A program made the translations under genes and the position numbers. DNA of 64,000 bases, taken from IMG/VR virus record IMGVR_UViG_3300046323_000587, positions 1 through 64,000 of that record, one strand, 5' to 3'. Position 1 is the first letter of the stretch; each line of letters begins with the position of its first letter. Shown here piece after piece: positions 5,872 to 56,512 of the stretch. Under the pieces are notes generated by a model. That model was not told where the DNA came from. It saw only the letters and a program-made list of their open reading frames with translations, and did no database searches.

Positions 5872-6825
5872 ATGTTAGATACAATAAAAAAAGCAAATTC
5901 AAATAAAGTAAAGTTAGGTTTCGATAATAAATTATATAAAGTAAGTTCTCTATTAATAGTTATAACTATTTTATTAGCTTTAATATATTCTTATTTTATT
6001 ATTAAATCTGAAATTCCAGTTACACCCAAATACGAAGAGCAATTACTTCACAAACTTCAAAGTAAAGACGGAAATCTATCAAAAGAAGAAGTTCAAGTGT
6101 TATTAAATACTTATGGAAAATACAAGATACTTCAGATGCTTTTCACACAAGAGTTTATCGAAGAAAGTTATACTTATGAAGAATTTTTATTAGATTACAA
6201 AGAATTAAAAGATAAACCTATATTTAAAATAGCTTTGTTGTATGAAAAAATTAATTTAAATAAAAGTAGTAATAAAATTATTTTAAATCAATTATACAAT
6301 GAAAATAAAAGAAGAATAAATAAATCAAAACAAAAAAAGGAGTTAATAATTATAACTACTTGTTTAAAATATGTTTTATACAAAGAAATAATAAAAAATT
6401 TTAGGTCTGAACACATTTTTTACATAAAAGATATAAAAATAACTTTAAGTTTATTAAACTTCTTTCATATTTGGATTGGTCACGGTATAGATTATAAAAA
6501 AGATTTTAATATAATTATAGAAGAGCAAACTCTTACAAAAGTACCTGAGTTTAATTACTCTTCTCACAATTTAATATTAGATTTAGATTTTTTATTTTCT
6601 AAAGTAAATAGTTTAGATTTAGATATAAATAACGATTTAAATAAACATAATAAACTATATTTTAAATTTTGTAATTTAGATTATGTTATATCTTTACATA
6701 AAAATAAAGAAAAAGATTTTAATATTACTACAATGTATATAGAAAGCAATGATTATTTAATCAAGAATTTTAATGCATTTATCAGTGTAAACCATCAAAC
6801 AATATATTTTTATGGAAAAAAATAA
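5872..6825 (+). CDS. TM-anchored HIxxxH protein 2 (putative RNase toxin, clade A)
   Basis: TM LLIVITILLALIYSYFII, NFFHIWIGH, NITTMYIE; close paralog of 8631-9614. Confidence 0.6.
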   Translation: MLDTIKKANSNKVKLGFDNKLYKVSSLLIVITILLALIYSYFIIKSEIPVTPKYEEQLLHKLQSKDGNLSKEEVQVLLNTYGKYKILQMLFTQEFIEESYTYEEFLLDYKELKDKPIFKIALLYEKINLNKSSNKIILNQLYNENKRRINKSKQKKELIIITTCLKYVLYKEIIKNFRSEHIFYIKDIKITLSLLNFFHIWIGHGIDYKKDFNIIIEEQTLTKVPEFNYSSHNLILDLDFLFSKVNSLDLDINNDLNKHNKLYFKFCNLDYVISLHKNKEKDFNITTMYIESNDYLIKNFNAFISVNHQTIYFYGKK

Positions 6826-7231
6826 TAATTTTTATTTCTATTTTAAAGATTTTTTAAATAGAAATAAAATTTTAAATCTTTTAAAAGAAGAGAAAGTATT
6901 ATTAGAAGAAGATGAAGTTATCACAAATTGTAAAATAGAGAGTCTTGTTTTTTCTTTTAACACCATTAAAGAAAATAATACAAAATTTGGTAATGATATA
7001 CTAATAGAACAAGAAAATACAATAATAAATGTTGTAAAAGTATTAAAAAATATAAAAAATTTTACATATTTTAAGGATAGAATTGACATTTATCAACTAC
7101 CCAATGTGTTAAAATTTATTTCCAAATTTATCCTTACTAGCAAAGAATTAATAATAATAAAAAATCTTGATACTGAAGAAGAGTATTTAATAACTGAAAC
7201 AACAATTATAAATTGCCATAAATATTTATAA
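6812..7231 (+). CDS. family A partner (putative immunity)
   Basis: Overlaps the toxin stop; C-terminal SKELIIIKNLDTEEEYLITETTIINC. Confidence 0.55.
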   Translation: MEKNNNFYFYFKDFLNRNKILNLLKEEKVLLEEDEVITNCKIESLVFSFNTIKENNTKFGNDILIEQENTIINVVKVLKNIKNFTYFKDRIDIYQLPNVLKFISKFILTSKELIIIKNLDTEEEYLITETTIINCHKYL

Positions 7232-7232
7232 A

Positions 7233-7670
7233 ATGATAGACTTAAAAAATAGTTCTTTTTATTTTTCTTTTGTAGATATTATAGATAGAAATAGAATATT
7301 AAACATAGTAAAAAAGAATAATATTTTTATTTACTCTGACTACTTAATATTAAATCGCAACATACCTTATTTAATTTATTCAAATAATTATATTTCAGAT
7401 AAAACTACATTTTACGATAAAAAATATTATGTATTTGAAAATGAGTCTACTTTTTTTAATACAATTAAAATAATAAAAACATTAAAATCTTTCACTTATT
7501 TACAAATACCTGACAATTTTTTTGAATGTTTTGATTTAAGTAGACTTTTAACTAAATTTGTTTTTAATAGCAAAGAATTGATAGTAATTAAAGATCTTGA
7601 CACGAATGCAGAATATATTGTAACAGAAAAAACAACTATAAATTGTACTAGTTTTTTTATAAAATGTTAG
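7233..7670 (+). CDS. family A partner (putative immunity)
   Basis: SKELIVIKDLDTNAEYIVTEKTTINC. Confidence 0.55.
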   Translation: MIDLKNSSFYFSFVDIIDRNRILNIVKKNNIFIYSDYLILNRNIPYLIYSNNYISDKTTFYDKKYYVFENESTFFNTIKIIKTLKSFTYLQIPDNFFECFDLSRLLTKFVFNSKELIVIKDLDTNAEYIVTEKTTINCTSFFIKC

Positions 7671-8119
7671 ACTTAAAAAATAACTATTTTTATTTTTGTA
7701 TAAGAGATATAGAAAAAAATCAAGAACTTATAGAAAAAATAATGCTTAGACATAATTACACAGAACATTGGTTTTCTATTAATACAGAAGTATTTAAGAT
7801 AAATAACAAAACTAAAACAATCTCTGGTAATGGAAGTTCAACTTACTGTAATTATATATTAATAGAAAATCCTGCTGTATTAGACAATATATTAGATGTT
7901 TTAAATAAAGTAAATACTTTTGAATATCTTAAAGAAACTTATCCAAGAGAAGAACGTTATATACATAATAGTTTAACTACAGTTAATATGTTAGCTAGGT
8001 TTTTAATTAATTCAAAAGAATTAATCATTATTAAAGACCTAAAAACATTGAATGAATACATAGTAACAGAAAATAGAGTAATAGATTGCAATAAATATTT
8101 AACCACATTATCTAATTAA
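7664..8119 (+). CDS. family A partner (putative immunity)
   Basis: SKELIIIKDLKTLNEYIVTENRVIDC. Confidence 0.55.
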   Translation: MLDLKNNYFYFCIRDIEKNQELIEKIMLRHNYTEHWFSINTEVFKINNKTKTISGNGSSTYCNYILIENPAVLDNILDVLNKVNTFEYLKETYPREERYIHNSLTTVNMLARFLINSKELIIIKDLKTLNEYIVTENRVIDCNKYLTTLSN

Positions 8120-8124
8120 ATAAA

Positions 8125-8607
8125 ATGATAGACTATCCCACAAACAATAAATTAAATTTTGTATTAAGCACTTCTATTGATTTAGAAGAATTAGTTAATT
8201 TATTTGAATTAAATAAAGTAAAAATTCATTATAGACTTAAACACAACACTATATACAGATTAGTATTACTGAAAGAAGAAATTATATTAGATGTACCTAA
8301 CAGTAATATTTATTATACTATTACCAATATTAACACTTTTGTAAATTACTTTTCTGCAATAAAAGATACTGATACAACAACACCTATGTATATTATGAAT
8401 GGTGATGACGGTACAGGTGATTCAGAAATAGGTAAATTTCATTTTGATAAAGAACCAGAAGAAGAGGATTTTCCACAAACAAAAGCTTATATTAGTAAGT
8501 TTCTTTATGATGCAGTAGAGTTAATTATATTATCTGATGAACGGTTTAATTGGACATTGATAACAGAAAAAAGCATTGAAAATATAACTCTTACAGATGT
8601 AGAATAA
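8125..8607 (+). CDS. divergent family A partner (putative immunity)
   Basis: SKFLYDAVELIILSDERFNWTLITEKSI aligns with the family A C-terminus. Confidence 0.5.
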   Translation: MIDYPTNNKLNFVLSTSIDLEELVNLFELNKVKIHYRLKHNTIYRLVLLKEEIILDVPNSNIYYTITNINTFVNYFSAIKDTDTTTPMYIMNGDDGTGDSEIGKFHFDKEPEEEDFPQTKAYISKFLYDAVELIILSDERFNWTLITEKSIENITLTDVE

Positions 8608-8630: not shown

Positions 8631-9614
8631 ATGATAAAAACAAAAGAAAAAGTTGATAAGGTTGATAAGAAGAACAATTATAACCTAGGTTTTGATAACA
8701 AATTCTATAAAGCAAGTTCATTAGTAATAATTATTTCGATTTTATTAACAATAGTTTTTTCTATTTACCCAATAAAATCTGAAATTCCAATTACGCCTAG
8801 TTATGAAGAACAATTATTACAAAAATTACAGACTAAAGAGGGAAATTTATCAAAAGAAGAAGTTGAAATATTGTTGAATATTTATGGAAAATATAAAATT
8901 CTTCAAATGTTGTTTACTCAAGAGTTTATTGAGGAAGAATATACTTATGAAGAATTTTTATTAGATTACAAAGAGTTGAAAGATAAATTAATTTTTAAAA
9001 TTGCTTTGTTATATGATGAAAAAAATTTAATTGGCAAAAATGCTGTAACTAAAAACAAAGTTATTTTAAATATATTGGGTTCAGATAATAAAGCTAAATT
9101 AGAATATACAAAAGCAATTTATAAAGATTCTTTAAAAGCTGTATTAAATTGTTTAAAATATGTTGTTTATGGAGAAATTAGAAAAAAGTATGAACCTTTA
9201 TATATTTTTAAACTAAAAGATATAGAAATAAAATTTTATATAACCTATTTATACCATATTTGGACAGGACATTGTATAGACTATCAAAAAGATTTTAATA
9301 TTATGTTGAATAAAACAAATATTGTAGATACATTTTCAGAATTTAGAAGAATTAATATATTTTTAGATATTGGTTTTTACGTTCAAAAATTAAATGACTT
9401 GGATTTAGATTATAAGAAGATTTTAACTAACAATGAAAATTTATATTTTAAATTAGGAGAAGTTATATATTGTTTAAGAATTATTGTAAAAAACAATGAA
9501 TATATAATAGAAACTTATTATCCAAAGAATGAAATAGATCTTTCAAGTAAAAAAACAATTATTGAAATTAAACTTAACTATAAAACATATTTTTATTATG
9601 AACACAAAAAATAA
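8631..9614 (+). CDS. TM-anchored HIxxxH protein 3 (putative RNase toxin, clade A)
   Basis: TM SLVIIISILLTIVFSIYP, YLYHIWTGH, IIETYYPK (EndoU-like terminal strand). Confidence 0.6.
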   Translation: MIKTKEKVDKVDKKNNYNLGFDNKFYKASSLVIIISILLTIVFSIYPIKSEIPITPSYEEQLLQKLQTKEGNLSKEEVEILLNIYGKYKILQMLFTQEFIEEEYTYEEFLLDYKELKDKLIFKIALLYDEKNLIGKNAVTKNKVILNILGSDNKAKLEYTKAIYKDSLKAVLNCLKYVVYGEIRKKYEPLYIFKLKDIEIKFYITYLYHIWTGHCIDYQKDFNIMLNKTNIVDTFSEFRRINIFLDIGFYVQKLNDLDLDYKKILTNNENLYFKLGEVIYCLRIIVKNNEYIIETYYPKNEIDLSSKKTIIEIKLNYKTYFYYEHKK

Positions 9615-10044
9615 ATTTTATTTTTACATATACGATACAAAAGAAGACAAAACTCAAGTTGAAAATCTTTGTGTAAAGTATAATTTTATTTGTGACAATA
9701 CTCATCCTTGGTTTTCTGGAGATACAGAATTATATATTATTGATACAATAGAAAAAAATGTTTGGGGAGATAACATTTGTAGTTATGCTAATCGTATTAG
9801 TATAGAAGATATCAATTTTTTAGAAAACATTTTTATTGTATTGAGTAGTTTAACTCAGTTTGAATACTCTAAGAACACTTTTCACAGAGACGAAGATTAT
9901 CGTTACATAAATGGAAAAAAACTTTTAACTACTAGAGAAATGTTAGCTCAGTTTTTATTTAAAAGTAAAGAATTAGTTATTATAAAAGATTTAATAACAA
10001 AAAAAGAGTATTTAATAACAGAGAATAAAATAATTAAATGCTAA
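9598..10044 (+). CDS. family A partner (putative immunity)
   Basis: ATG at 9598 overlaps the toxin end (track start 9562 is TTG); SKELVIIKDLITKKEYLITENKIIKC. Confidence 0.55.
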   Translation: MNTKNKFYFYIYDTKEDKTQVENLCVKYNFICDNTHPWFSGDTELYIIDTIEKNVWGDNICSYANRISIEDINFLENIFIVLSSLTQFEYSKNTFHRDEDYRYINGKKLLTTREMLAQFLFKSKELVIIKDLITKKEYLITENKIIKC

Positions 10045-10048
10045 ATTA

Positions 10049-10495
10049 ATGAAAGATTACAATATACTTTCTTTTATAATATCCTATGAAATAAATAGAG
10101 AAAAATTACTAGCTTTATTAAAACAATCTAATGCAAATCTTCAAAATTTTTTTAACTTCGATGAACAGGAGCCTGGATATGTAATATACAATAATAAAAC
10201 TAATACTTTTTATAGTGATTTTAGTTATATTGTTACAAATACAATTAAAATAGAAAATGAAAATCTATTATTAAATGTATTGAAAGTATTAAAAACTCTA
10301 AATACATTTAATTATTTTATAGAAACAACTAGAATTTTAGAATTGCCTGATAAAAGTAAATTTATTTCTAGTCTTTTATTTAAAAGTAAACATTTAATCA
10401 TTATTAAAGATTTAGAAAATAATAAAGAATATTTAATAACAGAAGACAATATTGTTGATTGTAATGATTTTTTGTCTAAAAAAGTTTTAAACTAA
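10049..10495 (+). CDS. family A partner (putative immunity)
   Basis: SKHLIIIKDLENNKEYLITEDNIVDC. Confidence 0.55.
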   Translation: MKDYNILSFIISYEINREKLLALLKQSNANLQNFFNFDEQEPGYVIYNNKTNTFYSDFSYIVTNTIKIENENLLLNVLKVLKTLNTFNYFIETTRILELPDKSKFISSLLFKSKHLIIIKDLENNKEYLITEDNIVDCNDFLSKKVLN

Positions 10496-10497
10496 TT

Positions 10498-10956
10498 ATG
10501 GGTACAAAAAATAAATTTTATTTTTATATAGATTATAGAAAAGAAACAGAGGTTACTGAAATATGTAAAAAATATAAATTTTCTTATGACTATGATCCTC
10601 TTTGGTTTTCTTGTAATACAGAAATATATACTATTGATACAGAAAAAAAATACGTTTGGGGAGATACTGTTTATAATTACAATACTTCCATTGCGATAGA
10701 TAATCTAAATCTACTAGAAAATGTTTTTATTGTATTAAGCAATTTAATTGAATTTGAATACTCTAAAACTACTTTTCAAAGAGATGAAAAAGATTATAGT
10801 TATTTTAAAAATTCAACAACAAAAGAATTGATACCAAGAATCTTATTTAAAGATAAATATTTAATAATAATCAAGAATTTAATTACATTAGAGGAGTATC
10901 TAATTACTGAAAACAGAATTATAAATTGTATCGAATATTTAACTCAAAATAAATAA
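10498..10956 (+). CDS. family A partner (putative immunity)
   Basis: DKYLIIIKNLITLEEYLITENRIINC; close paralog of 9598-10044. Confidence 0.55.
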   Translation: MGTKNKFYFYIDYRKETEVTEICKKYKFSYDYDPLWFSCNTEIYTIDTEKKYVWGDTVYNYNTSIAIDNLNLLENVFIVLSNLIEFEYSKTTFQRDEKDYSYFKNSTTKELIPRILFKDKYLIIIKNLITLEEYLITENRIINCIEYLTQNK

Positions 10957-10958: not shown

Positions 10959-12329
10959 ATGGAAAATAACATTAATGAATTATTAGACGAAAATACATTA
11001 AAGAAAGTATATCAAGATACAGTATATCCTTTTAATGTGTATAGATATATGTATGCAAAGTATCCTGGAGTTTATGGATATTTTTATTATGATTATTTAG
11101 ATAAAGAAATAATAGACATAGAAAAAATGTTAAATATTATTAAAAGTATTAAAGGAACAAAAATAAAAACTTTATATAATCTATGTTTGAAATATAATAA
11201 AAATCACAAAAAACCTAGCAACTATCATTCTTACGATATTGTTAAATATAACAATATTTTTAATATTTCTTATATAGGGAAAATTAAAAGATTTTATTCA
11301 AATTATATATTAGATATTAATGATGTAGCTAATTTTCCTAGCACACTTGAATCTAGTGTCAATGGAGATCAAAATATAAATGGAATAAATTTGTTAGAAA
11401 TAAATGAGATTCTCAGCCCTTTACATAATGATGACAGCACTGAAATAAACGGTATTAAAATGCTTTTTGATGGTTGGAGTTTTATTGAAGTAGAAATTGA
11501 AGATTGTCAAGTTGGTTTTATATTTAATGGTACTTTATCTGGAGTATATAGAATTGATGATTTACGTTCTCAAGAGTTAGCTTATACAATTATAGAAGAG
11601 ATGCACAAACTAAAAGACGATTACGATAAACTAAACAAACAAAAGAAATCTAAAATTAATTTTATTACTCAAACCACACAAGGAATGAATTTACAAGAAG
11701 TTGATTTCTTTCTTAAAAATCCAATTAAAGATTTGAGTTTATATTATAACGACAACTTTATTTCTATTGATGCACAAATCAAAAAATTAGTTGATAATAA
11801 AGATAAAGGATTTGTATTACTTCACGGTAAACCAGGCACAGGAAAGTCTAATTACATTGAATATATTACTAAATATTGTATTGATAAAGAAGTTAATTGT
11901 GTGTATTTACCTAACTCTTGTTTATCTATTTTATCTTCACCTAATTTTATCTCTTTTGCATTAGAGCAATTAAAGAATTGTGTGTTGATTATTGAAGATG
12001 CAGAAGAAATACTATTAAATAGAGATGTTAATAGAAATTCAGCTGTAAGTAATTTATTAAATCTTACTGATGGATTGTTGTCTTCTACTATTCAATGTAA
12101 AGTTATTGCAACATTTAATACTAAATTAAAAAATATTGATCCAGCTTTATTAAGAAATGGAAGGTTGACTATTCTGTATGAATTTGATGAATTATCTATT
12201 GATAAAACTAATAATTTAAGAAAATCTCTTGGATTAGAAGAAGGCGTTAAAAAAGAAGTATTGGCTGATATTTTTAATAATGCTACAATAGAGAAGAATG
12301 TTAAAGAAGGAGTAAAGATTGGATTTTAA
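10959..12329 (+). CDS. AAA+ ATPase with an unknown N-terminal region
   Basis: Walker A GKPGTGKS, Walker B LIIEDAE, LLNLTDGLL, SRH IDPALLRNGRL. Confidence 0.9.
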   Translation: MENNINELLDENTLKKVYQDTVYPFNVYRYMYAKYPGVYGYFYYDYLDKEIIDIEKMLNIIKSIKGTKIKTLYNLCLKYNKNHKKPSNYHSYDIVKYNNIFNISYIGKIKRFYSNYILDINDVANFPSTLESSVNGDQNINGINLLEINEILSPLHNDDSTEINGIKMLFDGWSFIEVEIEDCQVGFIFNGTLSGVYRIDDLRSQELAYTIIEEMHKLKDDYDKLNKQKKSKINFITQTTQGMNLQEVDFFLKNPIKDLSLYYNDNFISIDAQIKKLVDNKDKGFVLLHGKPGTGKSNYIEYITKYCIDKEVNCVYLPNSCLSILSSPNFISFALEQLKNCVLIIEDAEEILLNRDVNRNSAVSNLLNLTDGLLSSTIQCKVIATFNTKLKNIDPALLRNGRLTILYEFDELSIDKTNNLRKSLGLEEGVKKEVLADIFNNATIEKNVKEGVKIGF

Positions 12330-16467: not shown

Positions 16468-16502
16468 AAGCCTTTCTAATGTATTTTAGAAAGGTTTTTT
16501 TA
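16468..16502 (+). terminator. intrinsic terminator
   Basis: AAGCCTTTCTAA..TTAGAAAGGTTT plus T run, directly before toxin-like gene 4. Confidence 0.75.
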
Positions 16503-16528: not shown

Positions 16529-17551
16529 ATGACTGTACTAATATTAAAAATTAATAAAAAAAAAGTTATTAGAAAACAACCAAAGAATAAATTAACTATT
16601 AAATTATTATTTATTGTTAGTACAATCCTTTCAATAGGAATTTATTTTGTTTATAAAGAATATAAAGAAAGTTATTACAATGATTTAGAAATAAGACTAA
16701 TAAATAAACTTCCATTATCTCAAAAAGAAAAAAACGATTTATGTAAATATTTTTTAGGTACTGATAAAGAAAAATATAAAAAATATTGTTTAAATCAAGA
16801 TACTTCTATTAATAATTTATTAGAGAAATACCTATACAATAGAACAAATATTTCTTATACAGATAGTATAAAAATAGATTCAATTTATCTAGATTTCTTT
16901 AAAAAATTAGACAAAGCTAGATCAATAGAAAATAAAACTGGTAAAAATTTACTAACAGAATCTAAAAAAGTGGTAAATAGTTACAAAGAATATATAAGAA
17001 GAATTAAACATAAAATAAAATACAATGTATCTACAAAAGATATTTATTTATTGACTTTATATGTATATACTCAAATAACAAATGAGAAAATTTTAAATAA
17101 TTATGAGTTTTTTGTTTCTTATAAAAAACATAAGATTATAGTAAATAAATTTTCTTTATTACATATAATAGTTAGACATTATTTTATAAGCAATTATTAC
17201 ATAAATAACAATTCTACTTTATATAAATATACTACTTATAATGAATTAATCATAGAACTACAAAAATTTTTAAAAGCTATTTCTTTTTCTGAACAAATTG
17301 ATAAAACTGTATTATTTGAAAGTAGTCAATCTAAAGATATACAGAATTATAGTGTTTATATGTTTAATGATTCTGTAAAATTAGATTTACATCTAATTAA
17401 ACTTAAAAATACTTTTTTTGTTGAAACATTTTTTGTTCACGATAGTAGTGCAGTATCTAATTTATCTGACAATAGAAAAATAAAAACAACCAATTGTAAT
17501 TATTATAATCTAATTAATAACGTAAAAATATTTTATAAAGATGATAAATAA
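16529..17551 (+). CDS. TM-anchored HIxxxH protein 4 (putative RNase toxin, clade B)
   Basis: K-rich N-terminus, TM LLFIVSTILSIGIYFVY, CX14C, SLLHIIVRH, LYKYTTYNELI, FVETFFVH. Confidence 0.6.
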   Translation: MTVLILKINKKKVIRKQPKNKLTIKLLFIVSTILSIGIYFVYKEYKESYYNDLEIRLINKLPLSQKEKNDLCKYFLGTDKEKYKKYCLNQDTSINNLLEKYLYNRTNISYTDSIKIDSIYLDFFKKLDKARSIENKTGKNLLTESKKVVNSYKEYIRRIKHKIKYNVSTKDIYLLTLYVYTQITNEKILNNYEFFVSYKKHKIIVNKFSLLHIIVRHYFISNYYINNNSTLYKYTTYNELIIELQKFLKAISFSEQIDKTVLFESSQSKDIQNYSVYMFNDSVKLDLHLIKLKNTFFVETFFVHDSSAVSNLSDNRKIKTTNCNYYNLINNVKIFYKDDK

Positions 17552-17903
17552 TAACATAAAAGTAATTTGTAAACATTCACAAGATTTTGAATATTTAATT
17601 TTAGAGAATAAATTACCAATAGCAACTAAATATGTAGAAGAATCTAAAATTTTAAAAGAATTGTTAAATTATAAAGACTTTCTACCTTCTAGTTTTTATC
17701 TAAATTTACTTGATTTATTTATTGAACCTTGTGAAACAATAGAAAATTGTGAAGTAAATCCATATTATTTTTATTATTTTGATGAAGAAAGTTTGTACTC
17801 AATTAATGAATTTAAAAATTTATTGTTTAATAAAGAGTATATAACTAAAATAATTGTTAATTATAATTCAATAGAGATAGTATACAATATTTATAAAAAT
17901 TGA
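17541..17903 (+). CDS. family B partner (putative immunity)
   Basis: IKVIC..LPI..YLNLLDL..ITKIIVNYNSIEIVY; overlaps the toxin stop. Confidence 0.55.
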   Translation: MINNNIKVICKHSQDFEYLILENKLPIATKYVEESKILKELLNYKDFLPSSFYLNLLDLFIEPCETIENCEVNPYYFYYFDEESLYSINEFKNLLFNKEYITKIIVNYNSIEIVYNIYKN

Positions 17904-17907
17904 CACA

Positions 17908-18666
17908 ATGAAAAATACAAAGATTAAAGTTTTTTGTTTTAATAAATCTGAAACAAACTATGCAGAATTTTCTAATTTAATTCCAATATATTTAAGTGAA
18001 TATGTAGAAGAGTTTAAAAATATTTTTGGATTTGAAAACATTACTTCAAATAAAGTATTGCTAAATATAGACTTGTTATCAATAAAGAATATTTCTTACG
18101 AAAACTATACTGAGATGTTTTGTTTTAATCCAAATAATTTTTTACAAATAAGATTATTAAGAGAACTGTTTGATTTTAGTAGACATATTTCTTCAATACA
18201 AATAAAGAAAAATTCAATAGCTATTACTAAAACCAGTAAAGAAAACTATATCTACAAAAAAAAAGAATATATTCCTTTAAATTTAAATGAAAATAAAGAT
18301 TGTAGAGTAAGATATTGGTTTAGTAAAGGTTATGTTGATGGAAGCTTTTACTATGAACAAGTAAATAAAGTAAATATTAATTTAGGAATATATTTAAAAG
18401 AATTTGAAGAACTGTTTGGATTTAAAGACATATCAACTTCGAATATAATTTTAGATATTGAAAATAATACAATAGAGCCTAATACTTTTATTGAATATCT
18501 TAAAAAAGACGGTACACCAGAAATAGAATTTAATCCTCACATTATTTTTATTGTAGGTATTTTGAAAGAGTTGATTTCCAGTGATAAAATAAAAGCAGTT
18601 GATATCTATTCAGATAAAATAAAAATCGAAAAACATTCTAATACAAATATTTGTAATTATTATTAA
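17908..18666 (+). CDS. family B partner, two tandem domains
   Basis: 252 aa with two copies (IPIYLSEYVEEFKNIFGF / LGIYLKEFEELFGF). Confidence 0.55.
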   Translation: MKNTKIKVFCFNKSETNYAEFSNLIPIYLSEYVEEFKNIFGFENITSNKVLLNIDLLSIKNISYENYTEMFCFNPNNFLQIRLLRELFDFSRHISSIQIKKNSIAITKTSKENYIYKKKEYIPLNLNENKDCRVRYWFSKGYVDGSFYYEQVNKVNINLGIYLKEFEELFGFKDISTSNIILDIENNTIEPNTFIEYLKKDGTPEIEFNPHIIFIVGILKELISSDKIKAVDIYSDKIKIEKHSNTNICNYY

Positions 18667-18672
18667 TGCTTT

Positions 18673-19011
18673 ATGAAAATAATTTGTAAACAGTTTATTG
18701 ACAATTCTTATAAAGCATATATAAATAAAATACCAATTTTAGCAAGACATAAAAAAGATTGTTATAATATATTAGATAACGATTTTTTATTAGAAAAAGA
18801 ATATATAACTAAAACTTTTTATTACTTAGATTTAACAGATTTATCTATACAAATTGCTTCTGAAATTTCAATTGAATATAATTATTATTTATTAGATCAA
18901 GAAAATCAACAATCGGTCGATTTTTTAAGTAATATTTTAATTGATTTATCTAGTATTTCTCAAATTATTATAGAAGAAAATAATATACAAATAACTTATA
19001 AATATAAATAA
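18673..19011 (+). CDS. family B partner (putative immunity)
   Basis: MKIIC..IPI..YYLDLTDL..ISQIIIEENNIQITYKY. Confidence 0.55.
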   Translation: MKIICKQFIDNSYKAYINKIPILARHKKDCYNILDNDFLLEKEYITKTFYYLDLTDLSIQIASEISIEYNYYLLDQENQQSVDFLSNILIDLSSISQIIIEENNIQITYKYK

Positions 19012-19012
19012 T

Positions 19013-19369
19013 ATGGATCAAGATAGAATAGAAGTAATTTGTTGGAATAACGAATTGAATACTTCTGAAAAATTTTATAATGAGATTCCTATCTATATTG
19101 GTGAATATAAAAAAGAGTTTAAAGATTTATTTGCTGTTTCTAGTATAATAGAAGATTATGTTTTTATAGATTTAGTAAATTTAAAAGTAAGTAATCTTAA
19201 AATATCAGAAGAGAATAAAAAATATTGGAAACAATGGATTCAATTTCATCCTGATAACAGTTTCTTAATTAAGAAACTAAAAGAGATTCTTAAATACTCT
19301 GAAAATGTTGATAAAATAGAAATAAAGCAAAATGAATTAATTATTCAGTATAAAATAAATAATAATTAA
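19013..19369 (+). CDS. family B partner (putative immunity)
   Basis: IEVIC..IPIYIGEY..FIDLVNL..VDKIEIKQNELIIQY. Confidence 0.55.
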   Translation: MDQDRIEVICWNNELNTSEKFYNEIPIYIGEYKKEFKDLFAVSSIIEDYVFIDLVNLKVSNLKISEENKKYWKQWIQFHPDNSFLIKKLKEILKYSENVDKIEIKQNELIIQYKINNN

Positions 19370-19371
19370 TT

Positions 19372-19746
19372 ATGATACAAGTAATATGCGAACACAGAAA
19401 TAATGAAGAACCTTTGATTTTAATTGATAAGTTACCTATATCAGGACCATTTCAAGAAGACATAAATAAATTAACTTCTTTTCTTAATATTTCTAAGATA
19501 AACCACACAGACTTTTATTTAAATTTAATTGACTTTACTGCAATAGAGACAGAGGAATTCTTTTTTGATGATAATAATTTATATTGCTATTTTTATTTAG
19601 ATACAGATTATCAAGATTCATTAAATCAATTGAAACATATTGTAAATAATGTATCTAATATAAAAAGTATAACAATAAAGTTTGAGTCTATTTTAATAGA
19701 ATATTATAGTCATACTAATTTTGTAGACGTACATAAATTAATGTAA
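19372..19746 (+). CDS. family B partner (putative immunity)
   Basis: IQVIC..LPI..YLNLIDF..IKSITIKFESILIEY. Confidence 0.55.
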   Translation: MIQVICEHRNNEEPLILIDKLPISGPFQEDINKLTSFLNISKINHTDFYLNLIDFTAIETEEFFFDDNNLYCYFYLDTDYQDSLNQLKHIVNNVSNIKSITIKFESILIEYYSHTNFVDVHKLM

Positions 19747-20448: not shown

Positions 20449-20769
20449 ATGAATGACTATTGGATTAAAGCAATTGATTACTTTAATAGTATAGAAGAAG
20501 ACACTAAATTAGAACTAAAATTTTATCTTACATTTTATCCAGAAGAAAGATATTATACAAAATATTTTAATTGTAAGTCAAATTGTATAAATCATATTAA
20601 TAAAATAGTGTACAGACAAATTCGTATTGAAGGTTTGTCACCGGATATTATGGATTGTATTTTTGCAACAGAAGAAGAAGATGAAGATTGTTCAGATACA
20701 TTCAAAATGGAAAGAAAATATTATTTACAAACTATTTTTAAAGAATTTGTTAAAATAGTAAAAGAATAA
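20449..20769 (+). CDS. hypothetical protein, paralog of 20912-21232
   Basis: IDYFNSI..YLTFYP..INKIV..IEGLSP. Confidence 0.75.
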   Translation: MNDYWIKAIDYFNSIEEDTKLELKFYLTFYPEERYYTKYFNCKSNCINHINKIVYRQIRIEGLSPDIMDCIFATEEEDEDCSDTFKMERKYYLQTIFKEFVKIVKE

Positions 20770-20911: not shown

Positions 20912-21232
20912 ATGAATAATTACTATAAAAAATCAATAGAATATTTTAATTCAATTCAAGAAGTTGAACCATTAGTATTAGATATTTATCTTACTTATTA
21001 TCCATTAGATATTCATCACATTAAAGAATTTGAAACTAAACAAGAATGTATCGAATATATTAATAAAATAGTGTTTGGTGAAATTGTTATTGAAGGAATG
21101 GCACCAACAATAGAAGATTGTATTGGTATTATGACATATCCAGAAAATGAATTAGATGAACACGATATTTTATTAAAACAATATTATTTAGAAATAATTT
21201 TTAAAGGCTATGTCAAAAGAAAGAAAAATTAA
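20912..21232 (+). CDS. hypothetical protein, paralog of 20449-20769
   Basis: IEYFNSI..YLTYYP..INKIV..IEGMAP. Confidence 0.75.
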   Translation: MNNYYKKSIEYFNSIQEVEPLVLDIYLTYYPLDIHHIKEFETKQECIEYINKIVFGEIVIEGMAPTIEDCIGIMTYPENELDEHDILLKQYYLEIIFKGYVKRKKN

Positions 21233-22197
21233 TTTAGAAGAACTAAAAGATTTAGTAGATACAGGTATACATCCTATTATACATTACAACAGTAAATTAT
21301 CTGAATGTGATTTTTGTTGTGGAATTTCTGGGGATTTATTAACTCAATGTGACCATTATGTAATAGTTGAAAATTATTTAAGTGTTAAGAATTTAGTAGA
21401 AGTGAGAATGATTACTAATAGTAATAAATATAATAACATAAGAGCAAATTCTAAACAATTTTCTTTATTAAAAAATATTGGTATAGGATATTACACAGAA
21501 AGAACTTTTGTTATCAGCTTTGATTGTTTAGGTACAACAACTTATTTTGGATATTTTAAATTTCTTTAACTTTAAATCAAATTAAAATTTTGGCAATTGA
21601 TTACAGATTTAATAAATCAATTCTTTTAGAAGAGGTTGAAAAACAAACCAGTATTAAAGTAATATATATTAACAATGGATATTATTTAACATTAGAAGAT
21701 AATTATGGGCACATTTCTGAAATAGAAACTGATTTAGATAAGAGATTATCGATGATAGAAATAAGTGAATATGGTGGAAATATTCTTTATGATATTCTCA
21801 CAATATTAGTCGATACTTTTAAAGTTAAATTCATTACTGATGATGATTTAGAGAGAGCTTGTAGAGAACAGTTATCAAAAGAAAAAACTGAAAAGTTGTA
21901 TAGAGTTAAATAATTTAAACAAGCTTACCAATGAAAATTCGATTATTTAAATTAATAAATGACGGTAAATTGAATATATTTACTTTAAGTGTGTTTGATT
22001 ATATTTTAGAAATAAATTATTTTATTACTGACTATTATTCAAATAATATTTCACCGTATAGTAGATTAATATTTACTCTTTGGAAAGAAAATAAACCATT
22101 AAGAAAGAAAGTGTTTTATCCATTTAGATATCAATATAAAGTAGGTATAGATACATTGAATAAGATGAAAGAAGAAGATAAGTTTAGGAAATATTGA
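21210..22197 (+). other. three hypothetical CDSs (21210-21569, 21590-21913, 21931-22197)
   Basis: 21590-21913 is a paralog of 25494-25877 (L.EVE..T.IKV..HISEI..ITDDD/ED). Confidence 0.65.
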
Positions 22198-32407: not shown

Positions 32408-32437
32408 GTCATTAAATGTAAAACAATTTAATAAATT

Positions 32438-32929: not shown

Positions 32930-32942
32930 AAATCAATCAGAT

Positions 32943-33041
32943 ATGTTTAAAATAAATACAGTTCCAAATAAAGTAAGACATTTTAGTTCTGAAATTAAAT
33001 GAAACTTCACATTAAACTATTTTATCTATATAAAACCATAA
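32943..33041 (+). pseudogene. internally deleted toxin-like gene (N- and C-termini joined)
   Basis: MFKINTVPNK..*NFTLNYFIYIKP*; 33851-34807 starts MFKINQEP and ends NYFIYIKP*. Confidence 0.8.
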
Positions 33042-33046
33042 AAAAT

Positions 33047-33821: not shown

Positions 33822-33850
33822 ATAAGCACTAATAAATTAAATTACTTATT

Positions 33851-34807: not shown

Positions 34808-34816
34808 AAAAATATT

Positions 34817-35215: not shown

Positions 35216-35238
35216 CTTTTAATTTATAAACAAATATT

Positions 35239-35634: not shown

Positions 35635-35689
35635 TAATATATTAAATAGTGTAATAAATAAATAAGTAACAATTTAAATTTAGACTGAT

Positions 35690-36166: not shown

Positions 36167-36184
36167 ATTTTAAAACAAACTGTT

Positions 36185-36703: not shown

Positions 36704-36740
36704 TTAAATTTTTAAATATCTAAAAGTTAAATTTTATATT

Positions 36741-37736: not shown

Positions 37737-38080
37737 GACATATTCCAGTAAAATATTATTTTGGTAATACACCAGACACAGAATATAAAGTATACGATGA
37801 AATTATATTGTATGATACACTTTGTTTACATACTTTTAATGGTGAAGAATGGGTAGAATATGTTTTAAATTTAAATACATTTAAATTAATATGCACACCT
37901 TTTTTTCTATCTGTTTATCTATTTAATAATCACCGTACTTACGAATCAGTAATTTTTTATATTAAACAACACATTTCTAAAATTAGTTCTATGGAAATTA
38001 ATCGAGAAAGTGACTTAATTATTAATTTTAATGATGGTAGAATTAAAACATTCGAAGCTTATTACCAATATTATATATAA
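37733..38080 (+). CDS. family B-like partner (putative immunity)
   Basis: ATGA overlap with the toxin stop; YVLNLNTF..ISKISSMEI. Confidence 0.55.
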   Translation: MRHIPVKYYFGNTPDTEYKVYDEIILYDTLCLHTFNGEEWVEYVLNLNTFKLICTPFFLSVYLFNNHRTYESVIFYIKQHISKISSMEINRESDLIINFNDGRIKTFEAYYQYYI

Positions 38081-38091
38081 TTAAATATTCT

Positions 38092-38451
38092 ATGAGAAAT
38101 ATACCTGTTACTTATCCTACATCATTAGCAGAAACTTTTATTATTAAATATCAAACAAGACTTCCTGTTAATATTACAACATTAACTTTATCAAATACTT
38201 TATTTTACACATATAAACATAAAGATTACATATTAAATTTAAATACCTTGGAATCAATACAAATTTCTTTTTATTTAGATATACAATACTACGAAAATGA
38301 GATATATTGTAAATATAGTTTAGATTGTATAAAAAAAGAAATACACAAGATAAAATCAATTAAAGTAATTACACATTTACAAGATTGCAATAAAGAAATA
38401 ATAAAATTATTAGTAACGTATAAAGATAATTCAACAAAAATTTATGTTTAG
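38092..38451 (+). CDS. family B-like partner (putative immunity)
   Basis: MRNIPV..YILNLNTL..IHKIKSIKV. Confidence 0.55.
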   Translation: MRNIPVTYPTSLAETFIIKYQTRLPVNITTLTLSNTLFYTYKHKDYILNLNTLESIQISFYLDIQYYENEIYCKYSLDCIKKEIHKIKSIKVITHLQDCNKEIIKLLVTYKDNSTKIYV

Positions 38452-38794
38452 AACTTGTTTACATGAAATACAATATAATTCAATATGGTGTTTACATCAC
38501 ACAGATTATAATAAATTAAATAGAATTTATGACGAAGAAAATGTATCATTAGGTAATACAATTTGTATGTATTTTCAAGGTCGTCAACAAATATTTGATA
38601 CAGAATTACTAGAAATTAAAGAAATCCCTTTTGATTTTGGTGTTTATTATTTTAATAATCTAGAAAAAGAAGAAGAAGTTGTAAATACTGTTTTAGAACA
38701 TTATTTAAATATTGATTCTGTTGAAATAACAAAAGAGTCTATGATTATTACATTAAAAGATAAAACAGCATTTACTTTTGAATCTAAATTTTAA
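38444..38794 (+). CDS. family B-like partner (putative immunity)
   Basis: IFDTELL..PFDFGVYYF..IDSVEITKESMIITL. Confidence 0.5.
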   Translation: MFRTCLHEIQYNSIWCLHHTDYNKLNRIYDEENVSLGNTICMYFQGRQQIFDTELLEIKEIPFDFGVYYFNNLEKEEEVVNTVLEHYLNIDSVEITKESMIITLKDKTAFTFESKF

Positions 38795-47350: not shown

Positions 47351-47548
47351 ATGAAAATAAAAAATAAACTAATTAAAAATCCAGATACTTGAATTGTAAA
47401 TGAGTTTGATGATTGGGGAAGAGGTATTGGTATAGAAATTGTTGTAGTGCCGCCTTTTGATTTAGATATTGATACAGTTGATGTAAGATGGGAAGATGGT
47501 AAATATTTTGAATTTATTAAACAATTAACTAAACTTGAGAAACAATGA
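47351..47548 (+). pseudogene. small gene with in-frame TGA
   Basis: KNPDT*IVNEFDDWGRGIG..VDVRWEDG, TGA at 47390. Confidence 0.6.
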
Positions 47549-47971
47549 AAAAGAAAATTGGTTTTATTTTATTATTAATTACTATGTTCTTATATCTCTT
47601 GATGATTTAAGAATAGAATTTACAGGAAATATTAATAATAAAACCAAAGATAAAAAGATTTATCAAGAAGCTATTTTAAGAACAATAGTAGCTTTAAAAC
47701 AAAATAAAAATGTGATATTTGATTCTACAAATTTAACAAAAGAGAGAAGATTGCCTTTTATAGAATCTGTTAAAAAAAGTTGCCAAATAGTATAATTAAG
47801 TATAAATTATTTGATATAGGTTCTTCAACAGCTAAACAAAGAATACAAAATGATATTCAAAGTGGAATTAGTAGAGCTTCTGTACCAGATTCTTCAATAG
47901 ATAGACATTTTGAATCTTATAAACAAATGCTTGAAGACATTAAAAATGAAAATATAATTATTATGAATTAA
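47545..47971 (+). pseudogene. polynucleotide kinase-like (AAA_33) pseudogene
   Basis: ISLDDLRIEFTG..VIFDSTNL..R and KQRI..RASVPDSSIDRH lie in different frames; no GxxGSGKS P-loop present. Confidence 0.65.
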
Positions 47972-48321: not shown

Positions 48322-48745
48322 ATGTAAAATTTTAATCATTATTTACTATGAACATTGATATAAAACAAACTCTTATTCAAAAGAATGAAAAAATAATTAC
48401 TAAAATAGAATTATTAAAAGAAGAAATATATAATCTTAAACAACAATCACATTATTTATGGAAACACCTATTAAAAAAAAGTAGTTGATTTTACTAAAAC
48501 ATATCAAAATTATATTGGTAAATATTATGAATATGATGAAAGTAGAATTAAAATTATTAGAGTGTGTACTGAATTTGAATGTACTAGGATTCGTTGTATT
48601 AATGGAGTGTATTGTGTTCAATACAATATTGAAGGAATTGATCGGTATAAATATTTTAAAATCTACTATGAAAGTAACTTTTTAAATTTGATAAAAAATG
48701 GAGTAGAGTTAAGTGAAGAAGAGTTTTATAAATTTAACGAAAAAT

Positions 48746-50089
48746 ATGAAAAACATTAAAGAATTATACAAACAACATTGTCTTGAATATAACATTGAAT
48801 TTCAAGACCAAGAATTAACGGTAAAACCATATAATGATTCTACATTATTTTGTCCAGCAGGTATTCAGCAATTTAATCATTTAATTAATACTGGTTTTAA
48901 AGGTACATTTGCTAATATACAACCTTGTATTAGATTAAATGATTTAGAAGAGATTGGAGATGGTTCTCATTTATTATATTTTAATATGATTGGTCTATTT
49001 TCTTTTAGAGAATTGACATTACAACAAGCTATTGATTTTTGGATGAGTTTTATATCAAATAAATTAGAATTGAAGTTAAGTAAAATTACTATTCATCCTG
49101 ATAAACCTGAATAGAGAGAATTATATAATGACTATAAAGAAAAAGAGTTAATTCAATTTGATGAAGGTTGTATTTGGAAAGATGGGGTTAGTGAAGGATA
49201 TTGTACTGAATTTTATGTTGAATATTTAAGTGAAGATTTAGAAATTGAAAATATTGTAAATCCTAATGGAAATTCGATAGATGTGGGATTTAGTTGAGAA
49301 AAGAGTGATATAGCTGTCAAATACCAAGAATTAGAAAAAGAAACAGTAAAATTTTTGATTGAAAAAAGAGAATAGAAAAAGTTATTACAATACAAACTTA
49401 AGGATCAAAAAAATAACTTAATCAACTACAATAGTATTATAAAACAAATTAACCCTGCAGTAAGTCCAAATACTATTTATTATTGGTATTCTACAACTGA
49501 TAAACAACGTCAAATAGACCGCCAAAATAAACTACAAAAATGGTTAGAAGTTAATCAACGTGAAGGAGTTGAATATGATCTTCCAGGTTTATCACATACA
49601 TTTGAAAAATATTTATTAAATAGTGTTCTAAGTAAATATTTAGTAATAACAAAAAATAATGTGAGCTTATTTATTCAATATTTTGATAATTTATATAAAA
49701 AATTACAATAAATAAACGTCAGTAAAAAACAAACTCTTATTAATATTATTAATGAATTATTAGATTCTGAATATTTACCTTCTAATAAACTACAAGGTTA
49801 TGTTACAAGAAAATTAATTAGATTGTAGTATAAAGAATATAGTAAAAATGATAAAAAATATATTGAATCTAAATTTTTATCAATTTCTTTATATAATAGT
49901 ATTAAATTAGAACAATTAGCAATGTTTAAATCTTCAATATATAATGTGTTACCTGTACAAAAAGAAGTTGAAATCTATGAAAAAGCAAAAGAAACTTATT
50001 TAAGAAATAAAGATAAAGCTAAATTTAAAGATAAATCAAGTGACTGGTGGCAAGATTCGTTTGGAGTACGTCCAGAAGATTTTGAATAA
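48746..50089 (+). pseudogene. alanyl-tRNA synthetase-like gene with five in-frame stops
   Basis: STLFCPAG.QQF, NIQPCIRLND, GDGSHLLYFNMIG.FSF, IDVGFS*E, PSNKLQGYV.RKL; stops at 49112, 49295, 49373, 49709 and 49826, all in one frame. Confidence 0.8.
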
Positions 50090-54416: not shown

Positions 54417-54659
54417 ATGAAAATAAACTATAAATTTAATAAAAGTATTGAAAGTAGAGATTGTGTTGTAGAAAGTGTAGAGTTAGAAATTCTAGTGTAT
54501 ACACTATATAAAAAATTAACTTTACAAACATTTACAGAAGCATTAAACAATGCTAAGGAATCAAAAGATAATTTTTTAATTGGTGGTAATAAAGGAGAAG
54601 GAATTTGTAAACAGTTGGAATCTTTATATAAACAAGAAACTAAGCAATTTACATCTTAA
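54417..54659 (+). CDS. hypothetical protein
   Basis: 80-aa ORF. Confidence 0.55.
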   Translation: MKINYKFNKSIESRDCVVESVELEILVYTLYKKLTLQTFTEALNNAKESKDNFLIGGNKGEGICKQLESLYKQETKQFTS

Positions 54660-54859
54660 CAAGACCTAAAATACTACATCAACACAATACAAGAACCAAT
54701 AGAGTTTATAGCTGAATCTGATATAGATCAAGTGTTAATGAAAGAATGGGTTGGTGAATGGGAATATAAAACTATACCCTTATCTACTAAACATTTGAGT
54801 ATAGTTAAAACAGGTTCACCAAAACTTAATTCAAATTGGACACTTAAAATTAAATAATT

Positions 54860-55870
54860 ATGGAAATTAAAGAATCGAGCAATAAAACTAAAATAGGTTT
54901 TAATAAATTAACTATTAAGTATTCAAAATATGTGATTATAGTAGCTATACTTTTATCTAGTATAGTCGCTATTTTTTACAATCAAGAAAATAATGAAATT
55001 ACTTATATTAAAAGTTTAGAATTAAAATTAGATAGGAAAGAAGATTTAACTAATGAAGAACATCATTATTTATGTAGACATTACTTAAATTATAACTTAG
55101 ATAAATATTATCTACACTGTCTAAATCAAACAGAACAAGAATCTAAGTTTGTTTCATTATTTGAAATGTTTCTAAATGATTCTAATAGTATTTCAGATGT
55201 AGAAAAGAAATTTTTAGATAGTTTAACTCAAGATTTTATTGTTAAGTGTACAAAAGAAACTTCTTATAATAAGAAAAATTTATATGTAGAAGCAACAAAA
55301 ATATATAAAAGTTTTACATCTGTTGAACAAGATAAATTAAAGAAAAATGTAAATTATGTACCAAAAACCAAACTAAATATCTATAAAATACTTTATTATG
55401 TGTTCATTAAATTATCAAGAGAAAAAAGCTTATTGACATTAAATTATGTGTATAATATAAATGATATTGTAATTACAATAGACACAACAAGTTTATATCA
55501 TATAATTTCTAGACATTATCAATATAAGTATTTAAATGATAACAAATCAAGTTTATATAAATATGAAAACTACGATGAATTGATTTTAGATTTAAATAGA
55601 ATTTTGTTTGCTTTACAATTAAATAAAGAAATATTTAAAGATGTATTTTATCTTAATGGAAACAATGGAACAATATATTTGTTTACACAAGAGTATCAAT
55701 TAGATATACATTTTAATAGAATTAATAATTTTCACTATAAAGTAATTACTTTTTATATCTATGATCCAAGTGAAGTAATAAGAAAAGATCATAGACCTAA
55801 TAGAATTTTAAATAAAAAAGAAATAAAATTATTTAACGATTGTAAAATATATAAAGTAAATGAAAATTAA
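54860..55870 (+). CDS. TM-anchored HIxxxH protein 8 (putative RNase toxin, clade B)
   Basis: TM YVIIVAILLSSIVAIFY, CX14C, SLYHIISRH, LYKYENYDELILDL, KVITFYIY. Confidence 0.6.
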   Translation: MEIKESSNKTKIGFNKLTIKYSKYVIIVAILLSSIVAIFYNQENNEITYIKSLELKLDRKEDLTNEEHHYLCRHYLNYNLDKYYLHCLNQTEQESKFVSLFEMFLNDSNSISDVEKKFLDSLTQDFIVKCTKETSYNKKNLYVEATKIYKSFTSVEQDKLKKNVNYVPKTKLNIYKILYYVFIKLSREKSLLTLNYVYNINDIVITIDTTSLYHIISRHYQYKYLNDNKSSLYKYENYDELILDLNRILFALQLNKEIFKDVFYLNGNNGTIYLFTQEYQLDIHFNRINNFHYKVITFYIYDPSEVIRKDHRPNRILNKKEIKLFNDCKIYKVNEN

Positions 55871-56168
55871 TTATTGCGGTTCTTACTACTACAATTCTAA
55901 AATAGTAGAAGAAAATAAATTATTTGTTTGTTTTATTACAGAAGATGAAAAACCTTTTGAAGAATTTGAACATTTTGAAGAATATTGGTTTGATTTTAGT
56001 ACAAACACAAAAATTAAAGAGCTTACTCAAATAGAGCTTAATCCTTTATATGTAGATTGTTCAATACCAATTGAAAAAGAGATATATACTACAATTAAGA
56101 AACACAATAAAAACATATCTGAAATAGATATTCAGCAGAATAAAGTTAAAATAACTTATAAGTATTAA
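55860..56168 (+). CDS. family B-like partner (putative immunity)
   Basis: Overlaps the toxin stop; WFDFST..PLYVD..ISEIDIQQNKVKITYKY. Confidence 0.55.
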   Translation: MKINYCGSYYYNSKIVEENKLFVCFITEDEKPFEEFEHFEEYWFDFSTNTKIKELTQIELNPLYVDCSIPIEKEIYTTIKKHNKNISEIDIQQNKVKITYKY

Positions 56169-56173
56169 TTATA

Positions 56174-56512
56174 ATGGAAAGTAATTATTCTGAATACAAT
56201 GGAAAAAATCTAAATGTTTATTATGAAAAACATTGTAATACATTCTACAATGACAGCATTTTTGTACACTTTATTAATTGTTTAGATGATTCTATTAATA
56301 ATAGATCTTTTTGGATAAATTTAAATACATTAGAAAGAGTAGAAGAACTTAAACAAGTAAATATTATTCCTTTTTATGTAGATTTTAATTCTGAATTAGT
56401 TAAAGATATTTATTATTTATTACTAAATTATTACAAATCAATAGAAAAAGTAAGTTTTAATGAATTTGAAATAGAAGTAACTTATAATTATTATAATGTA
56501 CAAGATTTTTAA
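56174..56512 (+). CDS. family B-like partner (putative immunity)
   Basis: FWINLNTL..PFYVD..IEKVSFNEFEIEVTY. Confidence 0.55.
   Translation: MESNYSEYNGKNLNVYYEKHCNTFYNDSIFVHFINCLDDSINNRSFWINLNTLERVEELKQVNIIPFYVDFNSELVKDIYYLLLNYYKSIEKVSFNEFEIEVTYNYYNVQDF

Follow-up and report, generated by a model that had tools for sequence, protein, structure and literature searches.

Where a gene family recurs at distant sites of one genome and each of its clades is followed by a small-gene family of its own, does the pairing mean that the products bind each other, or only that neighbouring genes were copied together? This question is raised by the window analysed here, i.e. the first 64,000 nucleotides (64 kb) of the 226,480-bp virus record IMGVR_UViG_3300046323_000587 in IMG/VR (95% complete according to CheckV, with linear ends), in which a sequence-only reading had listed seven 'toxin' genes in three clades (A, B and C), each followed by partner genes. 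These genes, here referred to as T, are indeed real open reading frames (ORFs) of 317-340 aa that form a single family in a full-length alignment, and a hidden Markov model (HMM) search of the ORFs and six-frame fragments of the whole 226-kb genome finds eight members of the family, all inside the window, the eighth (4229-5131, T0) being absent from the earlier list. The explanation that we favour, tentatively and with somewhat less than even confidence, is that T genes and partners form toxin-immunity-like cassettes, a diversified battery of which is borne by the phage.

The T clades and their partner families

The cassettes and their parts are laid out along the window as follows.

4229-5131, + strand: T0, with a transmembrane helix, a Cys pair, the motif HIYFGH and a Ser in the terminal strand
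5144-5845, + strand: singleton gene of 233 aa behind T0, for which no relatives were found; candidate for a fourth type of partner
5872-6825, + strand: T gene, clade A copy 1 (alignment, tree)
6812-8607, + strand: family A array 1, with 6812-7231 (subtype alpha), 7233-7670 (alpha), 7664-8119 (beta) and 8125-8607 (divergent, acidic)
8631-9614, + strand: T gene, clade A copy 2 (alignment, tree)
9598-10956, + strand: family A array 2, with 9598-10044 (beta; the ORF opens at 9562, its likelier start being the ATG at 9598), 10049-10495 (alpha) and 10498-10956 (beta)
16529-17551, + strand: T gene, clade B copy 1, just 3' of a terminator-like hairpin (16468-16497)
17541-19746, + strand: family B array 1, with 17541-17903, 17908-18666 (fused), 18673-19011, 19013-19369 and 19372-19746
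31433-32407, + strand: T gene, clade C copy 1 (alignment, tree)
32438-32929, + strand: family C partner of clade C copy 1 (BLAST, HMM)
32943-33041, + strand: remnant of a third clade C T gene (first 19 codons, TGA, last ~11 codons)
33087-33821, + strand: two family C relics in one frame (33087-33383 and 33384-33821)
33851-34807, + strand: T gene, clade C copy 2 (alignment, tree)
34817-35634, + strand: family C array, with 34817-35215 and 35239-35634
36741-37736, + strand: T gene, clade B copy 2, with a GTG start
37733-38794, + strand: family B array 2, with 37733-38080 (ATGA overlap with the T stop), 38092-38451 and 38444-38794
54860-55870, + strand: T gene, clade B copy 3, the modelled copy, syntenic with the outside homologue P0008
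55860-56512, + strand: family B array 3, with 55860-56168 and 56174-56512

Searching the T family profile against 1.84 billion cluster representatives gave 13 matches, six from the window and seven from outside (P0007 to P0013), all of them in clusters of one to three members; judged by such sequence matches, the family is real yet very rare. In addition, no T match was found by tblastn against phage GenBank sequences, IMG/VR scans with P0009 and P0008 gave no relatives, and P0013 was the sole match of word-indexed homologue searches apart from the window's own proteins. In a maximum-likelihood tree of the eight window copies and the seven outside homologues, clades A, B and C of the sequence-only reading are all recovered: clade A comprises 5872 and 8631 (support 100/99) with P0009 as sister (98/96), clade B comprises 16529, 36741 and 54860 together with P0007 and P0008 (94/96), and clade C comprises 31433 and 33851 together with P0010 (88/88), T0 (4229) being left unplaced. 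Because outside homologues fall inside or beside them, these clades predate the phage. A contig of 272 kb encodes P0009; another, of 23 kb and with phage genes, encodes both P0007 and P0008. Neither of the cellular homologues, P0012 and P0013, has a membrane helix, and each adjoins a small gene of the Xre helix-turn-helix (HTH) type, P0012 belonging to an island that also contains GmrSD and type III restriction genes; this Xre/restriction neighbourhood fits a toxin-like role.

With respect to the genes downstream, each T gene of clade A, B or C is followed solely by small genes of a family specific to its clade, and the seven family A and ten family B genes counted before are correct. By BLAST clustering and HMMs, family A consists of six clear members and a divergent seventh (8125-8607, E = 2.5e-4), family B of 10 genes with 11 domains, 17908-18666 being a two-domain fusion, and family C of three intact genes and two relics that had been overlooked. 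The three families are also separable from each other in profile-profile comparisons (hhalign E = 0.5 for B and A, 0.05 for B and C, and 0.011 for C and A, with probabilities of at most 4%). On this point, the refuting condition set with the sequence-only reading, inseparability of the families, does not hold. Family B itself is held together only weakly across its three loci: all of its BLAST and HMM links are within-locus, and between loci there are solely profile-profile links, with E = 8e-5 to 2e-3 (probability 13-61%), unrelated pairs in the same test giving 0.0034 to 0.45. In HMM searches of 388 sequences (386 ORFs plus 17908-18666 split into its two halves) with one family B locus omitted at a time, the top rank went to a member of the omitted locus in two cases (E = 2.6e-4 and 5.3e-5), and in the third such a member came second (E = 0.028).

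The perfect match of clades to families has a permutation probability of 24/40320 over the eight cassettes, or of 1/120 when each of the two tandem pairs (A and C) is treated as a single cassette; however, the match needs no chance, since the descent of linked genes explains it. The arrays consist of two to five genes (up to six domains) separated by gaps of at most 23 nt or overlapping, and the T stop overlaps the start of the first partner by 14 and 17 nt in the two clade A cassettes and by 11, 4 and 11 nt in the three of clade B, the gap between T and its partner being 30 and 9 nt in clade C and 12 nt after T0. By sequence, the partners carry neither a signal peptide nor a membrane helix. 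Their isoelectric point is 5.5 or lower in 16 of the 20 intact partners, the genome median being 6.6 and the T proteins ranging from 8.7 to 9.6. No homologues of the partner families were found outside this genome, and ten partner or flanking proteins scanned against Pfam and PHROGs had no credible match.

The predicted C-terminal domain of T

Every phage copy of T starts with a Lys-rich stretch of 15-37 residues, which leads into a single hydrophobic helix and then into a helical region with the motif EEQLL-x-KL...E-x-L. The proteins of clades B and C and T0 further share a Cys pair spaced by 15-17 residues (14-16 in P0007, P0008 and P0010) which is absent from clade A. Glu65, His173, Ile174 and His178 (numbering of the first sequence) are invariant across the eight copies of the window, and both the H-I-x3-H motif and the Thr/Ser of 'I-x-[TS]-[FYM]' are invariant in 15/15 homologues.

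A model of the last ~170 residues of T 54860, built on the alignment of 15 sequences (predicted local distance difference test, pLDDT, 73.5; predicted template-modelling score, pTM, 0.69), comprises, in order, a beta-hairpin, a helix that bears the two invariant His residues, another helix and four strands, the Thr/Ser being found on the final one (E30-35, E38-43, H44-60, H73-89(-97), E98-101, E104-110, E115-124 and E127-136, with H49 and H54 in helix H44-60 and T132 in strand E127-136). Colicin-like BECR and PBECR domains have the topology pre-alpha, alpha and beta1-4, extra strands before pre-alpha being allowed and often present (10.64898/2026.08.28.747851), their catalytic residues reside on the pre-alpha helix and on beta4 (10.64898/2026.08.28.747851; PMC5512222), and a conserved His on the N-terminal helix together with a Thr/Ser on the terminal strand serves as a criterion for BECR domains (PMC5512222). 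The T domain displays the core topology in its predicted model only, and the placement of the His and the Thr/Ser in the model as well as in the 15 sequences.

Amongst AFDB clusters, the domain matches a MuF-type 'phage head morphogenesis' protein, Ntox35, bacterial EndoU and PBECR3 (E = 2e-3 to 2e-2, probability 0.89-1.00), with template-modelling scores of 0.31-0.45 by query and up to 0.60 by match (0.44/0.60 for bacterial EndoU). Of the best 35 rows of a VIA-align comparison with 48,161 PDB chains, 30 are RelE, ParE, HigB, YoeB, BrnT, CdiA-CT or colicin D, and an Atlas search with its own model returned EndoU, PBECR1-4, Gp49/RelE and Ntox35, which is an independent pointer to the same set. 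Structure searches of BFVD and Swiss-Prot gave weak matches of the same kind. Taken together, the structural comparisons point one way, but weakly. With the full-length T model, Foldseek against PDB returned noise and VIA-align was dominated by long-helix matches, and T has no credible match in Pfam, in PHROGs or in an HMM search of PDB sequences. On these grounds, the C-terminal part of T is probably a BECR-type RNase domain, and the label 'toxin', which draws on the modelled BECR topology and the conserved set of His, His and Thr/Ser, is plausible.

In being encoded by a phage, in its predicted topology and in the positions of its His (N-terminal helix) and Thr/Ser (C-terminal strand), T resembles the PBECR/MuF-C domains (PMC5512222; 10.64898/2026.08.28.747851), and its best neighbours in AFDB and BFVD are MuF-type proteins, PBECR3, EndoU, Ntox35 and polyvalent-protein nucleases. 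Unlike PBECR domains, it matches no PBECR Pfam model significantly, has a second invariant His, and is fused to a membrane helix and a helical region instead of MuF, portal or polyvalent proteins; it is also found among small early-type genes and not among virion genes, in eight to nine paralogues each with an array of small genes. In turn, the type II toxins RelE, HigB and ParE are the top solved structural neighbours of T and likewise belong to adjacent and often overlapping gene pairs, and the Xre-type HTH genes next to the cellular homologues recall HigB-HigA. T differs from them in being three times longer and membrane-anchored and in having conserved residues other than those of RelE, and the phage partners differ in having no Pfam-recognised DNA-binding domain and in numbering up to six domains per toxin.

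Duplication, dispersal and decay of the cassettes

That whole cassettes duplicate as units, as the sequence-only reading had proposed, is supported by the tandem pairs of clades A and C and by clade B, whose cassettes are found at three sites (16.5, 36.7 and 54.9 kb, ~20 kb apart), each with B-family partners. In the case of the third clade B cassette, the gene 5' of T 54860 (54417-54859) is homologous to the gene 5' of P0008 (L002 9510-9920), which indicates that the cassette is positionally conserved and that the linkage of T and partner predates the split of the two phages. T 54860 and P0008 are ~25-30% identical and their partners barely comparable (hhalign E = 0.006 for the P0008 pair against family B), and the partners evolve much faster than T. 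The partner of P0009 aligns with family A at the C-terminal motif of that family (hhalign E = 0.21); such links of outside partners to families A and B are suggestive and do not amount to evidence. The upstream gene 54417-54859 itself carries a deletion when compared with its L002 orthologue, and its frame is interrupted by a TAA at 54657. On the related contig, both T cassettes are followed by paralogous nucleotidyltransferase-like proteins of ~217 aa (L001 2380-3036 and L002 11869-12519), which have no counterpart after the cassettes of the window.

Since every clear relationship within family B is confined to one locus, the B arrays probably grew locally after dispersal. Also in family A the arrays were not copied intact, as the subtypes interleave between the two arrays (alpha, alpha, beta, divergent after the first T and beta, alpha, beta after the second), and the first partners of the two clade A toxins are thus of different subtypes. 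The two clade A proteins themselves are 68-92% identical over alignment columns 41-120 and 24-38% identical over the C-terminal domain (27/40 and 37/40 identical positions in N-terminal blocks of 40 residues versus 9-15/40 in C-terminal ones). This pattern is weaker in clade C and absent from clade B; it resembles polymorphic toxins and, coming from a single pair, may be taken as suggestive.

A ninth cassette, which had escaped the earlier reading, lies between the two clade C copies and has lost the body of its T gene. At 32943 the DNA reads MFKINTVPNKVRHFSSEIK, followed by an in-frame TGA and then by NFTLNYFIYIKP and a stop (NYFIYIKP end). The motif [MV]F[KR][IL]N..P occurs at four sites in the six frames of the genome, namely at three T starts and in the 32943 remnant, and the 3' part of the remnant is identical in 28/32 nt to the end of 33851-34807; motif and 3' identity together imply that the body of a clade C gene was deleted at 32943. 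The first of the two relics behind it (33087-33383) has no ordinary start and is closed by a TAG exactly at the conserved Trp of the family, and the second (33384-33821; family C HMM, E = 2.4e-7) has no ATG, GTG or TTG at the family start position. The relic stretch is identical in contigs of three metagenome runs, these being fragmentary contigs over 31400-37390 with no informative variants, and some of the runs that reproduce it may be the source sample. The two partner genes of this T-deleted cassette are decaying.

The in-frame TAG at 33381 is one of three that align with a Trp of relatives, the others (49112 and 49826) corresponding to two W positions of an alanyl-tRNA synthetase (AlaRS)-like orthologue in L003, the 272-kb relative. 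The AlaRS-like (tRNA-synt_2c) gene at 48713-49850 is 82-91% identical to this orthologue of 360 aa and is broken by TAG, TGA, TAG, TAA and TAG, with ~270 extra bases in mid-gene, and is probably a pseudogene or the carrier of an insertion. Stop-codon recoding (TAG = Trp) was considered and rejected, because TAA and TGA also break genes and because TAG ends three partner genes at family-typical C-termini; decay of TGG to TAG is the simple reading of the three sites.

The region around the cassettes has a low G + C content (~21% in the window versus 25% in the whole record), nearly all of its ORFs lie on the + strand, and several freshwater metagenome runs contain the sequence. Phage-type genes in the window code for YopX, an Rnl2-type RNA ligase, a T5orf172 nuclease, an EcoRI-type methylase, SF2 helicase-like proteins and an AAA ATPase, the latter (456 aa, 10959-12329; PF00004, E = 1.6e-13) directly 3' of the second family A array. 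Between the second clade C array and T 36741 there are two genes, 35690-36106 (138 aa, acidic) and 36185-36703 (172 aa, basic), that are unrelated and have no family match, and more pairs of small paralogues (20449-20769 and 20912-21232; 21590-21913 and 25494-25877) show that local gene duplication is common in the region beyond the T cassettes. The Rnl2-type RNA ligase is intact (28691-29329), the polynucleotide kinase (PNK)-like gene at 47535-47971 consists of two overlapping ORFs in different frames, and a full PNKP is found in a related phage (L001 10279-11157); the presence of RNA-repair genes near putative RNase toxins may be of relevance. Within the window there is no tRNA and no Rfam match. 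The sole tRNA-like gene of the 226-kb genome, at 213761-213830 and hence outside the window, has an anticodon loop of 6 nt and was called 'Stop|Ile (ta)' by ARAGORN. A promoter scan gave fewer matches than in shuffled sequence and is for this reason uninformative.

Interaction or linkage by descent

Although the sequence-only reading had taken the pairing to reflect physical specificity, the co-variation alone is no evidence for it, because adjacent genes that are copied together must co-vary. Functional coupling of T and its partners would rather be backed indirectly: by their linkage, which persists at three loci far apart, and in another phage at a syntenic position, although T has diverged to ~30% identity; by probable translational coupling, the stop/start overlaps of 4-17 nt recurring in all five cassettes of clades A and B; by the charge complementarity of basic T proteins and mostly acidic partners; and by the sole toxin-deleted cassette being also the only one with broken partner genes.

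In the toxin-immunity explanation, T would be tethered by its N-terminal membrane helix, and its C-terminal domain would have a BECR fold of the colicin D/PBECR type, a putative metal-independent endoribonuclease that would use the His pair on the pre-core helix together with the Thr/Ser of the final core strand. The downstream products, small and mostly acidic, would be clade-specific immunity proteins that are co-translated with T; we infer RNase activity and toxicity for the latter, and specific inhibition for the partners. T and partner would have been duplicated as a unit, in tandem in clades A and C and to dispersed sites in clade B, followed by local duplication, fusion and decay of partners, which would have expanded into tandem arrays resembling homogeneous polyimmunity loci.

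A basic domain of BECR type with a small acidic gene directly 3' of it, on the same strand and tightly coupled, is what is seen in polymorphic toxin cassettes with BECR tRNase tips, such as colicin D/ImmD, colicin E5 and CdiA-CT/CdiI, which the T cassettes also resemble in the conserved N-terminal and divergent C-terminal parts of clade A and in the orphan partners left behind after the loss of a toxin. Unlike polymorphic toxins, they are borne by a large phage, have no T5SS, T6SS or T7SS (type V, VI or VII secretion system) module and no colicin translocation or receptor-binding domain, and encode partners that match no known Imm family. The term homogeneous polyimmunity loci denotes tandem paralogous immunity genes on the same strand, with short spacing and uninterrupted by toxin genes (PMC3482391). 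The arrays of same-family partners are alike in their tandem order, common strand and short gaps, their role in immunity being putative, and the fused two-domain partner 17908-18666 resembles the 'polyimmunity proteins' (PMC3482391); in contrast to such loci, each array follows a toxin of its own, T genes standing between successive arrays in families A and C.

A number of results weigh against the toxin-immunity explanation or leave it without support. The complex predicted with alignments for T 54860 (residues 60-336) and 55860 scored 0.00, which speaks neither for nor against binding, and partner 55860 scored 43 in this prediction. The Atlas models of A and C partners are too poor to assign a fold (pLDDT 0.37-0.38), and the partners after P0007, P0008 and P0009 match no A, B or C HMM (best hhalign E = 0.006). 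For the T domain, the VIA-align Z scores do not exceed 4.7, which the tool itself labels as a case where only a common arrangement may be shared, Foldseek against PDB was not significant (best HigB2, E = 0.08), and there is no Pfam BECR, PBECR, EndoU or Ntox match at E <= 1 for the T proteins of the window or at E <= 5 for the outside homologues. The Lys and Arg counts flanking the membrane helix predict an N-in/C-out orientation in 11 of the 13 copies that carry one, in a proteome in which the positive-inside rule is weak because Lys is abundant throughout its AT-rich coding sequences; the conserved Cys pair would likewise suit an exported domain, and if the C-terminal domain is outside, it would be apart from cytoplasmic partners after export. 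Finally, it is not obvious what need a virulent-looking jumbo phage might have for eight self-neutralised toxins.

Of the other explanations, one assumes linked multigene families of mutually independent genes of early or accessory type, e.g., for host takeover or anti-defence, that were co-expanded in the manner of an 'accordion', with no interaction of T and partner. It would account for the co-variation, as genes duplicated as a block co-vary by descent, for the within-locus character of all detectable family B relationships and for the other paralogue pairs scattered through the region, and it is in line with partners that have neither homologues outside the genome nor a known immunity fold and with a complex prediction that gives no support to binding. 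Against it speak the persistence of the linkage across the divergence and distances given above, the recurrence of the stop/start overlaps in five cassettes, and the restriction of broken partner genes to the cassette whose T body is gone, and we consider this explanation rather unlikely.

Alternatively, T might be exported and membrane-anchored and act outside the cytoplasm, e.g., in superinfection exclusion, in envelope remodelling or as a released, bacteriocin-like weapon, the downstream proteins being chaperones or inhibitors that act before export, or being unrelated to T. To the predicted orientation may be added that the N-terminal region, with 15-37 residues, exceeds what a cleaved signal peptide would have and that the Cys pair is conserved in clades B and C, T0, P0007, P0008 and P0010. 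There is also a precedent in the colicins and CdiA toxins with BECR domains, which are exported while their immunity proteins remain cytoplasmic (PMC3482391). Yet the charge rule is a weak guide in this Lys-rich proteome, clade A has no Cys pair, the cellular P0012 and P0013 have no membrane helix, and T is accompanied by no recognisable delivery or import module (T5SS, T6SS, T7SS, colicin T or R domains, MuF), but only by its membrane helix and helical region; we regard a site of action outside the cytoplasm as unlikely.

Very unlikely, finally, is a role of T as an RNA-processing RNase of the phage similar to T4 RegB, one that would steer the infection by cutting particular RNAs of host or phage, with the small proteins as specificity or timing factors and not immunity proteins: RegB is a BECR-fold RNase used by a phage on mRNAs during infection, and solo PBECR domains do occur in phages (PMC5512222), and the cassettes belong to a block of small genes, all on one strand, as is typical of early regions, with an RNA ligase and a PNK-like gene nearby, but RegB is single, small and soluble, needs no partner array, has no anchor and is neither a sequence match nor a top structural match of T, whose membrane anchor would be left unexplained and whose eight divergent copies, each with a private partner family and with arrays of up to six partner domains, fit a diversifying conflict better than housekeeping processing.

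If the cassettes are true toxin-immunity pairs, the phage would spend ~19 kb (~8% of its 226 kb) on a self-neutralised RNase arsenal, and the logic of polymorphic toxins and polyimmunity, so far that of bacteria and of PBECR effectors packaged in virions, would also apply to early phage proteins anchored in the membrane. Going further, one might picture a virulent-type jumbo phage with a polymorphic toxin system of its own, in which eight diversified, membrane-presented or exported RNase toxins with private immunity arrays serve to fight co-infecting phages, or infected cells to fight their neighbours (by superinfection exclusion or by killing competitors), rather than for simple host shut-off, the arrays doubling as a protection against the T variants of related phages; this picture is speculative and we regard it as rather doubtful. 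Should the partners turn out not to bind T, the locus would still be a clear case of long-lived gene linkage in an accessory region of a phage. If the pairs are real, T would be a new and very rare BECR family (13 representatives among the 1.84 billion clusters) accompanied by three or four new families of candidate inhibitors, and the evolution of specificity could be studied on eight natural toxin variants and 27 candidate inhibitor genes from a single genome (28 domains, 5144-5845 and both relics included).

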